A stretch of 64,000 nt of DNA from Hemiscyllium ocellatum (GCF_020745735.1 NC_083402.1:7812001-7876000); one strand, 5' to 3'. Positions 1,111-57,128 are shown, numbered from the stretch's first letter. The notes: generated by a model from the letters alone, not told the origin. Numbers and translations: made by a program.

Positions 1111-1458
1111 CATGTACCTGCAGCCGAGTCTCTTTCTGGATCAGATACAAAAGATTGACTCTTGATCTGTATTCCACCAGACACAGGTAAGTGTGATTGT
1201 CCCTCACACTCAGCTGGTGTATCCTGGTCGAGGCGTTTCCCTCCTCTGGGTTCCCGATGAGCTCGTACCGATTTCCACCGTGTCCAGTTGTCCAAGTTCC
1301 CTGTGATTGGGCAGTAAATGTAACGATGTGTTGGTAGGGCTCCTTCCTCATCCAGGTAACAGTGGTCAGGGGAGGGTAGGATCTGGTCTTGAAGATACAG
1401 GGTAAAGTAACTGAATCTCCCTCTGTCCCACTCACCACTGGGACATTTCTCTGAGCAG
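1111..1458 (-). CDS. Ig V-set exon V1, Siglec-15-like, lacking the sialic-acid-binding Arg
   Basis: Acceptor tttgtcctttcctcag (AG at 1460-1459) and donor G|GTAAGA (1110-1109). 348 nt, phase 1-1, open frame. Motifs LPC, W, RYELIGNPEEGNAS, TYLCLVEY, TRLQV. PLTTVTWMRKEPY resembles human Siglec-15 PLTAIWRAGEPY (recalled sequence). Confidence 0.9.
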
Positions 1459-1643
1459 CTGAGGAAAGGACAAACATCAGAATGGATGAGGTCAGTGTGC
1501 AGAAGTTCTTATTTCAATATGTTACATTCCTTTCAACTTCACAATAAAATGAACAATTAAAGACTCCACTTATATCTCCAAGAAGAGTCACCCTGATCAA
1601 AATGTCTCCTCGTCACTCAATTTGAAAACCTTGATTACAAGAT

Positions 1644-2270
1644 TAAAAATCAGACATCACCAGGTTATAGTCCAACAGGTTTAATTTGAAGCACTAGCTT
1701 CCGGAGCGCTGCTCCTTCATCAGGTGATAGTGGAGTATAAGATTGTAAGTCACAGAATTTATAGCAAATGTTTATAGTGTGATGTCACTGAAATTATATG
1801 TTGAAAAAGACCAGGATAGTTTGTTAAGTCTCTCGTCCGTTGGAATGACCATGTTGGTTTCAGTTCTTTTATACGTAAATCATAATTTTCTTTTAAAAGT
1901 TACATCCTCAAGTGAACTTGAACAATTGGTGTCTGTCAGCCCAGATAATGTATTGAAGGTGTGAGCTCCCCTGGGTGATACTGTCTGTGCCACAATGTTT
2001 AGACTGATTCTCATCTAAAAAATGAATTTGTACAAACTTACATGGATTCATGCAGTTTTTTGAGCAAAGTATGACGAAACTCTGAAAGTACAAATTCACC
2101 CCACAAACTTATATGTGTATGTGTATGTGTTTATTGGGAGGTGGCTGTGAGTATCTGTGAAAGAGTGTGCACATGTGTGTGAGTGTGAGTATAAAGGGGT
2201 ATAAGTCTGTAAAGAGGGTGCATGTGGGAGCGTCGGAGTGTATTTGTGAGAGTATGAGAGAGCATCTGCG

Positions 2271-2341
<71 letters not shown>

Positions 2342-2702
2342 GACTGCTGAAGTGTTCTCTGACTTGGGGGGAGCACTCCTGACTGTTGATTGTTGTACGA
2401 TGCCCATCCATCCATTGCCGTAGCCCCTGCTTGGTCTCACCAATGCAGCATGCCTCAGGGCATCCTTGCCTGCAGCGAATGGGATAGACAAAGTTGGCTG
2501 AGTTGCATGAGTACCTGCCACATACAGCAGTCTGGGACATTCAACCTTGGACTTTCAGGTGACCATCCTCCAAGGTGACCTTCGGGACAGGCAGCAACAA
2601 AGAGTGGTCAAGCAGAGGCTCTTGGCCAAGTTCGGTACCCATGGGGATGGCCTCAACCGGGATCTTGGGTTCATGTCACACTACAGGTGACTCCATCATG
2701 CT

Positions 2703-2776
<74 letters not shown>

Positions 2777-3273
2777 ACACACACACTCTGATGCAGACCC
2801 TCTCTCATACGCTCACACATACACTGCCACACTCACATATGCACCTTCTCACAGACTTTATACTTACACTCACACACAGGCACACACTCCGCACAGACAC
2901 TCACAACCACCCCCTCCCCCCTTCCCCAACCCCGCCCAACACACACACACACGCACATGCACACATGCACATATAAGTTTGTGGGGGTGAATTTGTACTT
3001 GCAGAGTTACATTTTACTTTGCTCAAAAATCCATGTAAGATTCTACAAATTCTTTTTTTTTGATTAGGATCAGTCTAAACATTGTGGCACAGACAGTATC
3101 ACCCAGGGGAGCTCACACCTTCAATACATTATCTGGGCTGACAGACACCAATTGTTAAAGTTCACTTGAGAATGGAGCTTTGAAAAAAAAGTTTTTTTTT
3201 AAGCCTGTTGGACTATAACCTGGTATAGTGTGATTTTTAACTTTGTACGTCCCAGTCCAACACCAGCATCTCC
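1644..3273. mobile_element. Fold-back Penelope derivative with two inverted 3' UTR/pLTR arms
   Basis: Left arm is minus strand with a GIY-YIG remnant (SCNSANFVYPIRCRQGCPEACCIGETKQ). Right arm is plus strand with the endonuclease C-terminus (GTHGDGLNRDLGFMSHYR*). Both arms carry (TG/AC)n. 18-bp TSD aaaccttgattacaagat at 1626-1643 and 3274-3291. Confidence 0.85.
2274..2337. repeat. (TG)n microsatellite; mirror (AC)n at 2705-2785; others at 60558-60631 (TG), 62375-62422 (GA), 175-225 (GA/CA) and 10710-10800 (CT)
   Basis: Read directly from the sequence. Confidence 0.95.
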
Positions 3274-53967: not shown

Positions 53968-54171
53968 CTGAAAAGGAGATATTCAATACAACCCTGAACT
54001 AGAGCATTTCTACTCAGCAAAAGTGAGAGCTTCCTGATGAAGGGCTTTTGCCCGAAACATCGATTCTCCTGCTCCTCGGAAGCTGCCTGACCTGCTGTGC
54101 TTTTCCAACACCACACTCTCGACTCAGAGAATTTCTACCGCTACTCTCGTGTCAGTCACTGACTACCTTAC

Positions 54172-54211
54172 CTTTTCAAAGGTGTAGTTCTCTTGATTTG
54201 CTGTGAACACC
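54172..54211 (-). CDS. Candidate first cytoplasmic exon (40 nt) of the V3 gene
   Basis: Acceptor tttattttctcttcag, donor AAG|GTAAGG. Phase 1 to 2; (G)CSQQIKRTTPLK is in frame with the TM exon. Confidence 0.6.
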
Positions 54212-55506
54212 CTGAAGAGAAAATAAAGATTCATAAATATTTTGTAAAATTATGAACAAATTTGTCACATTGTCTCCACAATTGGAAATGTTTCCCCCCC
54301 ATACACTTTCATCCCTTTATCCTCAAGGACTCTAACTCCTTCTTAAAAACATTCCTTGCTTTGGCCTCAACTGCTTTCTGTGACAGAGAACTCCACAGGA
54401 TCACAGAAACTCCAAAGAGATTGCTCTCCATGTCAATCCTGAATGGCATACCCCATACCCTTTGACAGTGACCATTGGTTCTTGTCTCCCCGGTCACTGG
54501 AAACATCTTTCCTACATTTACCTCGTCGAGTTTTACTGAAATTTCACACATTTCCCTGAGATCCCCCTCATTTTTCCAAACTCCAGTGAATACCATCCTA
54601 ACCGATCCAATCTCTCTTCATACATCAGCCCTGAAATCCCAGGAGTCTGTCTGAGAAACCTTCATTGCACTCTGTCCAACGCCAGAACATCCTTCCTCCC
54701 ATAAGGGGACCAGAACTTCACCCAGTACTCCAGGTGTGGTTTCTCCAAGATCTTGTACAATTACAGCAAGACATTCCTGCTCCTGTATCAAAACTTCTCT
54801 CTATGAAGCCAAAATGCAACTGACAAAGAAACGGAGGGAGAGGCCATGAAGATAAGGATCAGAATTTAACTTCACAAGGTCTTCAGCACTTACATAACTG
54901 AGCTCAGGATTCTGAGGCCTTCAATATCCCTAAGACATCCTGCCTGTTCAATTTGTTCAGCCAGAGCAAAGACAAGTAATGAGGGCAGTCCCAAAACAGA
55001 TCAGTGCCTGAACATTGCACTCACTGCACAGGCCAGAAGAGGAGTCCATGTTACCATTCCTCCCCAAATATAGCTCTGTTACTCAGACTATCTGAGCCAC
55101 CGTGTCTATGCCTTTATCCAGCAAACTCTCAAAAGCCACTTGAACAATAAATCACAGAAGAATATCGTGGTGAACTGCAACTTCCTTTCTGTTCTGTTTG
55201 AGAGTCTGTACAAAGTGGGAATGAATGCAAAAGATGTGGGTTGTTGTGATTCTGTCAAATGGGAGTGAATGAAAACACATTTTAGAGCATTGAGATTCAA
55301 CAGTGATGGGAGGAGAATGGGGATTGATCCATCAGAGTTCAATGGAATGGGTTTGAATGGATCTCCTTGTGAAACAGCCTCAATGTTAAATCACTCACAA
55401 CAAGGCTCCATCCCAGGCAACATCCTGGTGAATCTCCTGTGCACCCCTCCCTCTTGTTATGACAGAACCATACTGTTTTATCAAACCTCATTCTCCATGA
55501 ACCCAC

Positions 55507-55608
55507 CTCCTTTGTTCCTGAAGTTGATGAAGATTATGACGCAGATGGGCAGGATGAGAAGCATTGGAATGACTGGCAGATATACAGTGGTGGGCTCAGT
55601 CCTCTTCA
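55507..55608 (-). CDS. Transmembrane exon following V3
   Basis: Acceptor gttcttgctgttttacag, donor GAG|GTGGGT. 102 nt, phase 1-1. Encodes (V)KRTEPTTVYLPVIPMLLILPICVIIFINFRNKG: an uncharged hydrophobic stretch followed by a basic stop-transfer RNK. Confidence 0.8.
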
Positions 55609-56779
55609 CTGTAAAACAGCAAGAACAGCATTATTCAGGAATCCCTCCATGTTGCTGCAGTGAAACTTGTAGCAGGGTTACAGAGCAAGAGGTTAAATGT
55701 ACAAACAGGATGTTCTGTAATGGAGCAAACCAGTTCAACACTCTCACCTGCTGTTTCCCACAGACCAGGAATGTGCTCCCCTCCAAATAATTACCCAATT
55801 ATCGCCTGAAAGATCACTCTATTAAATCTATTTCCATTGGCCTTTCAGGCAGTGCATTGCAGATCAGAACAACTCCTGAAGGAGGCAACTGCTTAATTCT
55901 GTGACACAGAATATAAGATTAGATGGATACTTTAAAACATTCTGCACGGTATTTCGTGGACCCAGCCTTGACTCACCAACACACGGGCACCCATTACTGA
56001 GCACTGATCTACCATCCCACCCTGTCCTGTGTCCTACATGTAGGCCAGACCAAGTAAGGAAGGCAGATTTCATACTGTAAAGGACCTGACTGAGTCAAAT
56101 GAACTTTCCCAACTATCAACAGTGGTCACATGTGACCATAAGGTTAGCTTTTCATTTAAATTCCAAATGTTTAAAATTTCATTAACCTTTCACCTTCTGC
56201 CGTGGTAGGATTTGAACTCATGGCCCCAGACATGAGTGTCTGGATTAGTTACCCAGTGACAGGAGCAGTATACCACCACCTCCTTTTATAACCCATGAGG
56301 CCAGACCCCACCTGCGGAGAGAAACAGGGTTAATATTTTAGTTTCAATAACCAAATTATTAAAAATTCGCAGAACCTGCTGCACTCTCACTGTACACCCT
56401 CTACAGACGGAATACTTCTTAATATTCATTCAATTACAAGATGAGAAGGACATTGGGTAGGTCAGTGTTTATTACCCATCCCTATTAGTTCAGAATAAAC
56501 CACATTGCTGTGTGTCTGGAGTCACAAGTAGGCCAGGCCAGGTTAGGATGACAGTTCCCTTCACAAAAGTTCATTAGTGAACCAGATGGGTTTTTACAAC
56601 AATAAACGGTGGTCACATAGTCAGCTTTTGACTCTTATTTTGAGAATTTTATTAATTTCAAGTTCCTCCATCTGCCATGGTAGGATTTGAATCCTTCTGC
56701 CCAGAACATTACCTGGGTGTTGGATTAACCATCCATCGATAATACCATCAACTGTTGTCCCCCCACAATGATTTCTTAC

Positions 56780-57128
56780 CATAAACCCGCACCCGAGTCT
56801 CCTTCGGGATCAGATACTGAGAATCAGGTTCTGACCTGTACTCCACCAGACACAGGTAAGTGTGATTGTCCCTCACACTCAGCTGGTTTATCCTGGTCGA
56901 GGCGTTTCCCTCCTCTGGGTTCCCGATGAGCTCGTACCGATTTCCACCGTGTCCAGTTGTCCAAGTTCCTTGTGATTGGGCTGTAAATGTAATGAAGTGT
57001 TGGTAGGGCTCCTTCCTCATCCAGGTAACAGTGGTCAGGGGTGTGGGAGTCCCAGCTCCTGAAGATACAAGGTAAAGTAACTGAACCTCCCTCTATCCCA
57101 CTCACCACTGAGACATTTCCCTGAGCAG
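56780..57128 (-). pseudogene. Ig V-set exon V3 (paralogue of V1) with a +1 frameshift
   Basis: Same acceptor and donor context as V1 (AG 57130-57129; G|GTAAGA 56779-56778) but 349 nt long. The ORF track splits it into 56824-57186 and 56748-57020. Removing one G of TGGG (plus strand ccc 57051-57053) restores FRSWTPTPLTTVTW. Confidence 0.8.

Follow-up and report, generated by a model that had tools for sequence, protein, structure and literature searches.

Siglec-15-like V exons of Hemiscyllium ocellatum differ mainly in two antibody-like loops on a near-invariant framework

A stretch of 64,000 nucleotides (nt) of the genome of Hemiscyllium ocellatum (GCF_020745735.1 NC_083402.1:7812001-7876000), hereafter the window, holds two exons, V1 and V3, that encode immunoglobulin V-set domains related to Siglec-15 but with leucine in place of its sialic-acid-binding arginine. 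The two exons are nearly alike except in the loop between strands B and C (the BC loop, which resembles complementarity-determining region 1, CDR1) and the loop between strands F and G (the FG loop, which resembles CDR3). Comparison with relatives in other sharks and rays suggests that these are old loop types set on a near-invariant framework, and that such types have been re-assorted among germline paralogues by gene conversion or recombination, a reading to which I give a probability of about 0.65.

V1 (1111..1458; all exons and their parts described here lie on the minus strand) is an intact Arg-less exon of LOC132826527, 348 nt long and of phase 1-1, with an acceptor AG at 1460-1459 and a donor GT at 1110-1109. 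It corresponds at 100% identity to residues 22-137 of the RefSeq proteins P0209 and P0211. Its BC loop codons (KTRSYPP, 1370..1390) were placed by alignment and by strands B and C of a structural model, and its FG loop codons (RVNLL, 1148..1162) by alignment. V3 (56780..57128, 349 nt) is a frameshifted Arg-less exon inside LOC132826558, with BC loop codons at 57040..57060 (RSWDSHT) and FG loop codons at 56817..56831 (EPDSQ).

Counted in pairwise and six-way alignments, V1 and V3 differ at 5 of 68 nt in strands A and B, at 10 of 21 in the BC loop, at only 5 of 195 in the core that runs from strand C to strand F (LTT..CLV), at 10 of 15 in the FG loop and at 6 of 37 in the G strand; the adjacent upstream intron has 12 differences in 110 nt plus one gap. 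The loops together hold 20 differences in 36 nt and the remaining exon 18 in 312 (Fisher p=6e-13), so the clustering is not due to chance. An initial annotation of the window had described the near-identical core, the FG loop contrast (at the same coordinates) and an intron with about 13 differences in 110 nt, and all three descriptions are borne out. The claim that every loop residue differs is also right, although the number is 12 of 12 rather than 11. The two loci are homologous over the exon, about 115 nt of the intron upstream of it and about 15 nt on its downstream side, after which repeat insertions intervene; past these the downstream introns, compared by pairwise local alignment, align again with 55 mismatches in 307 nt (0.18). 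The proximal upstream intron of V1 (1459..1570) is homologous to that of V3 and of the Chiloscyllium copies, and the homology stops at a repeat with several copies in the window. Just downstream of V3, homology to V1 is broken by an interspersed-repeat insertion on the minus strand (56487..56747), which has a further copy at 33907-34148 and in which no tRNA was called.

V3 is most likely a decaying or dead exon, judging from the assembly and the RefSeq models. At 57038..57041 it has a run of four C where all four copies of Chiloscyllium punctatum have three, and the reading frames on either side of the shift match P0006 of C. plagiosum (…IFRSWDSHT / LTTVTW…). From these frames, with one C fewer, the V3 BC loop is RSWDSHT. 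The initial annotation had removed a G instead and arrived at RSWTPT, which is wrong. The extra base brings the exon to 349 nt, so its inclusion would put all downstream exons out of frame; the P0185 model joins the upstream V exons to the transmembrane exon at 55609 and omits V3, which was found in none of the RefSeq proteins retrieved. V3 has 10 private framework substitutions and V1 has 4, a difference that is not significant. Six of the 10 are replacements, some of which, such as the change of D to G in EGDSV and that of Q to P in LIQKE, fall at positions invariant in the other H. ocellatum copies. Two RefSeq models of relatives, P0019 (Rhincodon typus) and P0037 (C. punctatum), are out of frame over part of an Arg-less V exon (…PAECE.QSHLPVSGG, HRYIY.PITG…), and frameshifted V exons may be common in these relatives.

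An exhaustive HMMER search returned 251 proteins with E≤0.001, of which 20 reached E≤1e-30, and the best-scoring matches that were looked up are RefSeq models of sharks and rays: Hemiscyllium, Chiloscyllium (two species), Stegostoma, Rhincodon, Heterodontus, Scyliorhinus, Mustelus, Cetorhinus, Carcharodon, Heptranchias, Pristiophorus, Narcine, Hemitrygon and Amblyraja. V1 and V3 thus appear, from their sequences, to be members of a family, spread across elasmobranchs, of V domains that derive from Siglec-15 and lack the sialic-acid arginine. Gene models and the window together supply 15 distinct Arg-less V exons of H. ocellatum, each a unit that carries its G strand and splice donor within the same exon. 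Among these 15, entropy averages 1.70 bits over the 12 loop columns and 0.20 bits over the framework, in which 64 of 100 columns are invariant. The loops make up 11% of the columns and account for 51% of the entropy (permutation p<1e-5), with 13 distinct sequences for the BC loop and 11 for the FG loop. In Heterodontus, Pristiophorus and Scyliorhinus, too, variability is concentrated in these two loops. Variability is therefore not spread evenly across these copies (an even spread is what the initial annotation had named as telling against its proposal), and the entropies together with the modelled loop positions uphold its picture of a germline, non-rearranging family that varies at CDR1-like and CDR3-like loops.

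An AlphaFold model of V1, made with a 56-sequence alignment, has the V-set strand order with a predicted local distance difference test score (pLDDT) of 89.7. In this model the variable residues 24-30 fall in the predicted B-C loop (23-30) and residues 100-104 in the predicted F-G hairpin (99-103). Among solved structures Siglec-15 (7ZOZ) comes closest, whether the comparison is made by profile (E=5e-31), by single sequence or by Foldseek (template modelling score 0.80). L94 of V1 aligns to Siglec-15 R143, the residue whose salt bridge holds sialic acid. The counterparts of residues 100-104 are D149-R153, where V150 and R153 contact Neu5Ac and which Y154 and E155 adjoin (PMC10264397), so the variable FG loop corresponds to a segment known to contact ligand. 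The motif CLVE, with no arginine, is present in V3 and in all 15 H. ocellatum copies; V2, the other V exon of the V1 gene, keeps CRVE.

The gene models of the family have either an Arg-positive V domain, an Arg-less V domain and a transmembrane segment, or a leader, one V domain and a transmembrane segment. None has a C2-set domain, whereas the Siglec-15 ectodomain consists of a V-set plus a C2-set domain (PMC10264397). The transmembrane segments of P0211, from the V1 gene, and of P0185, from the gene around V3, are uncharged. The tail of the V1 gene has the motifs ILYAEI, CTYASI and VTYAAV and looks inhibitory, resembling immunoreceptor tyrosine-based inhibitory motifs (ITIMs). A group of proteins encoded outside the window (P0188, P0189 and P0202) has a lysine in the transmembrane segment (…VVKLPP…) and a short tail, and looks like an activating counterpart to the ITIM-like tails. 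Taken together, these features suggest a family of paired receptors in which the second V domain, the one without the arginine, would offer a germline panel of loops. In single-V isoforms the model would place the variable loops at the membrane-distal tip. In two-V forms they would lie at the junction between the domains. KIR2D receptors contact ligand through the BC and FG loops of their second domain, which sit at the hinge between the domains; by analogy the shark loops could form a composite site with the first domain, or could tune that domain.

The loop types are old and recur across genera rather than changing fast. V3 and the C. punctatum copy L002 are identical at all 36 loop nucleotides, and differ at 7 of 195 nt in the core and 24 of 110 in the intron; V3 also has 0 of 21 differences from L003 in the BC loop and 0 of 15 from L001 in the FG loop. 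The V1 loops recur in C. punctatum P0180 as ETRSYPP and RVNLL, and related BC and FG motifs are present in Stegostoma and Rhincodon. From these comparisons each loop type appears to be under purifying selection once formed, and the contrast between V1 and V3 reads as one between two old loop types on a shared framework. The word hypervariable, used in the initial annotation, is thus an overstatement, since the variants are discrete and kept across genera, and V3 itself is frameshifted and skipped. The idea that the loops arose by compensated frameshifts was rejected, as shifting the loop sequences by eye gave no better match.

The distribution of these types among paralogues suggests exchange. 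In H. ocellatum either BC type (R or W at loop position 3) is found with either FG type (…LL or …Q), and in Heterodontus two BC and two FG types likewise occur in all four combinations. Mosaic or intermediate loops also exist (SRWYYPP, RSWDYLP, RFNSQ, RLNSQ and EHNLL). One case is a trio of clear orthologues, P0188 of Hemiscyllium, P0202 of C. plagiosum and P0189 of C. punctatum, whose members are 88-89% identical over their full length. The BC loop is MARDSHT in P0188 and P0202 and RSWDSHT in P0189, so that in C. punctatum alone MAR has become the common RSW, with loop DNA identical to that of the paralogue L002; the three-residue swap looks like a short gene-conversion tract. A GENECONV-like run between L002 and L003 spans the BC loop (p=0.0008 uncorrected, about 0.012 when corrected for 15 pairs). 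The proposal of the initial annotation that loops are swapped as cassettes is therefore supported as regards reassortment, through the four combinations and the MAR/RSW swap; actual exchange is suggested and not proven.

Several observations weigh against this reading. The DNA-level tests have a sample of only six sequences, the two Hemiscyllium exons of the window and four C. punctatum loci (L001-L004), and among these the pairwise homoplasy index (PHI) test shows no sign of recombination overall (p=0.63). Dense polymorphism in the loops confounds the run test, and the combinations were scored on proteins, so that recurrent mutation could have produced them. The ratio of nonsynonymous to synonymous divergence (dN/dS) in the loops is about 1 (0.57/0.51 among the six sequences) with all 12 loop codons multi-hit or replaced, so the ratio is not interpretable and positive selection is not demonstrated. 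The frameshift and skipping of V3 are read from the assembly and the RefSeq models. As to function, in two-domain forms the loops face the first domain and may tune interdomain geometry instead of contacting ligand directly.

The strongest competitor is concerted evolution, in which conversion would homogenise the framework and proximal intron within each species and selection would shield old, divergent loops. Such homogenisation was the first of two options in the initial annotation, according to which the core had diverged less than the intron, silent sites included. For total divergence this is so (5 of 195 against 12 of 110, p=0.004), because purifying selection acts on the protein. At silent sites it is not: by the Nei-Gojobori method dS between V1 and V3 is 7.0/73.7 = 0.095 over the whole framework (dN 0.047) and 2.0/45.3 = 0.044 over the core alone, and neither differs significantly from the intron divergence of 0.109 (p=0.81 and p=0.35, respectively). 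Equality of silent and intron divergence is what the annotation itself had named as speaking against it, and its argument from silent sites fails. Concerted evolution does find support in the distal downstream intron, which is more diverged (0.18) than the proximal intron and silent sites (0.10, p=0.026). However, within-species pairs are no more alike than between-species pairs in exon and intron distances, and exon dS stands in the same proportion to intron distance in both kinds of pair, so the distal/proximal contrast is no evidence for homogenisation within species; furthermore, no site separates both Hemiscyllium exons from all four Chiloscyllium exons. The loop dS of 0.51, well above the 0.095 of the framework (p=0.01), would also fit shielded old loops, but it stems only from multi-hit codons: every loop codon is replaced, and the figure, a product of pathway averaging, is therefore no clean estimate of age. 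Finally, a framework-only tree puts V1 with H. ocellatum copies that bear other loops, and P0180 with C. punctatum copies (80-92 in the Shimodaira-Hasegawa-like approximate likelihood ratio test), as homogenisation would predict, yet several orthologue pairs are still recovered on that tree and the approximately unbiased (AU) test does not reject a grouping of V1 with its loop orthologue P0180 (p=0.20). I consider concerted evolution unlikely on this balance.

Plain birth-and-death without exchange is less likely again. Here the loops would change fast after duplication, under positive or relaxed selection, and then freeze, and shared motifs would reflect descent or convergence. The agreement between framework dS and intron divergence is as expected under it, as is the PHI result, and the loop changes, which fall at 17 of 24 first and second codon positions and at 3 of 12 third positions, fit change driven at the amino acid level. 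It does not readily account for the four combinations of BC and FG types in both H. ocellatum and Heterodontus, for the mosaic loops, or for a C. punctatum orthologue in which three consecutive residues have been exchanged for the common motif of its paralogues. A third reading, in which V3 is a product of misassembly (a chimera or a miscalled homopolymer) and the contrast or at least the frameshift is not biological, is very improbable. Although the shift is a single base in a short homopolymer and an assembly gap lies 13 kb away, V3 agrees in its loops and framework with assemblies made independently for another genus, the DNA flanking it is unique and runs collinear with the introns of paralogues, it carries the private substitutions described above, and P0019 and P0037 show that models of relatives also read V exons out of frame.

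If reassortment of old loop types is the right reading, the history of the family may be pictured as follows. The Arg-less V exons found across sharks and rays, with leucine for the arginine, would derive from Siglec-15; in most gene models such a domain stands after an Arg-positive V domain and before a transmembrane exon, with either ITIM-like tails or a transmembrane lysine. The family would have grown by duplication of V exons and of gene blocks. Purifying selection would keep the framework nearly invariant, leaving copies that differ almost only in the BC and FG loops, which are predicted to lie at the N-terminal tip. The loop types, old, limited in number and each conserved across genera, would then be re-assorted among paralogues by short-tract gene conversion or recombination, and the function of all this would presumably be to diversify ligand specificity.

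How does such a family compare with known receptors? Siglec-15 is the best match in both sequence and fold, with the cysteines, the tryptophan and the 'YxCxVE' framework in common, and V2 even keeps the arginine in CRVE. The Siglec-15 class has a positively charged transmembrane residue for DAP12 or DAP10, and one shark paralogue group has a transmembrane lysine as Siglec-15 does. In other respects the two part ways: V1 and V3 have leucine for R143, the shark receptors have two V domains or one and no C2-set domain, the V1 gene has an uncharged transmembrane segment and ITIM-like tails, and the shark genes form a multigene family with variable loops, whereas Siglec-15 is known as a conserved single-copy gene. 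Since these two genes lack the arginine, the C2 domain and the charged transmembrane segment, V1 and V3 are, on sequence grounds, not Siglec-15 orthologues but apparently Siglec-15-derived.

In kind, the shark family resembles teleost NITRs, KIR/LILR and paired Siglecs. Like the NITRs, it consists of clustered V-type genes that do not rearrange, varies in the germline at CDR-like regions, has both inhibitory and activating members and expands by birth-and-death. NITRs have been considered possibly the only non-immunoglobulin diversified V family in vertebrates (PMC7916673). The shark family differs in being nearest to Siglec-15, with no sequence kinship to NITRs shown, in belonging to cartilaginous fish, in a variable domain that ends YLIQKETRLQV with no J-like FGxG, and in the site of its diversity, the CDR1-like and CDR3-like loops of a V domain that is in most cases the second. 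Membership of the NITR family proper was rejected, as the best relatives are Siglec-15 and pIgR-type V domains and FGxG is absent. The pairs Siglec-5/14 and Siglec-11/16, together with KIR/LILR, comprise activating and inhibitory partners with near-identical ectodomains and exchange between paralogues; conversion there homogenises whole domains, whereas the shark data point to reassortment of short loop segments and do not support homogenisation.

Germline immunoglobulin heavy-chain variable (VH) genes offer another likeness, as in the mouse T15 family, whose members are more than 88% alike, include one pseudogene and differ mainly in their CDRs (PMC2187977). Unlike these, the shark exons have no recombination signal sequence and do not rearrange; the exon encodes the G strand as well and runs directly into a splice donor. 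An assignment of V1 to V gene segments with a recombination signal was rejected for the same reason. Some 45 nt past the downstream end of V1, at 1060-1066 on the minus strand, there is a perfect CACAGTG heptamer. Neither V3 nor any of the four Chiloscyllium copies has it, and it is probably a chance match rather than a recombination signal.

Diversified V-region families are rare outside immunoglobulins and T-cell receptors. If the reading holds, the shark genes would be an independent, germline, loop-diversified V family in the oldest lineage of jawed vertebrates, which bears on how V-domain binding sites can be diversified without RAG, and their natural loop swaps on a fixed framework, beside an intact sialic-acid-binding domain, provide testable material. 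A bolder version would make the family a second NITR-like system, carried by sharks and rays and independent of teleost NITRs: paired inhibitory and activating receptors built from Siglec-15, each with a V domain that reads sialic acid and one without the arginine, whose germline combinatorial loops are cassettes moved by gene conversion and whose variants have been held for tens of millions of years. This version is tentative, and I would put it at somewhat less than even odds. Literature searches for a description of an Arg-less, Siglec-15-derived shark family returned nothing relevant; the gene models are already in RefSeq, and no paper on the family was found.

The remaining exons of both genes in the window are arranged on the minus strand as well. 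LOC132826527, the gene of V2 and V1, begins with a leader exon (26719..26779; residues 1-21 of P0209 and P0211) that has its ATG at 26779 and a donor GT at 26718-26717. V2 (10949..11335) is the Arg-positive Siglec-15-like V exon; besides CRVE it has a J-like FGSG end, and it is only 33% identical to V1. The isoforms P0209 and P0211 splice the leader straight to V1 and leave V2 out, so the gene can, according to these models, make a single-V receptor with the V1 loops predicted at its tip. For LOC132826558 the window contains the transmembrane exon (55505..55609, residues 266-300 of P0185) and the last cytoplasmic exon (52881..53006, residues 313-354), both at 100% in tblastn; the two V domains of P0185 fall outside it. 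An assembly gap without strand (43039..43333) separates the two genes, with non-coding flanks and a (CA)n run beside it. It is at least 13 kb from any family exon and touches neither an exon nor any reading frame, and only the distance between V1 and V3 is made uncertain by it.

A second family gene in C. punctatum (L004:27740-31557) encodes a 382-residue product with two V-set hits and begins 6 kb downstream of the C. punctatum gene used in the comparison, a tandem arrangement there too. Upstream of V1 in the window there is an inverted repeat of about 480 bp with arms at 1876-2338 and 2724-3201 (78.6% identity), part of which is a repeat also present at 37366-37849 and 59988-60496. Finally, just upstream of V2 on the minus strand lies a G-rich stretch (12001-14000; GC 0.565, GC skew +0.46), in which no tandem repeat was found.

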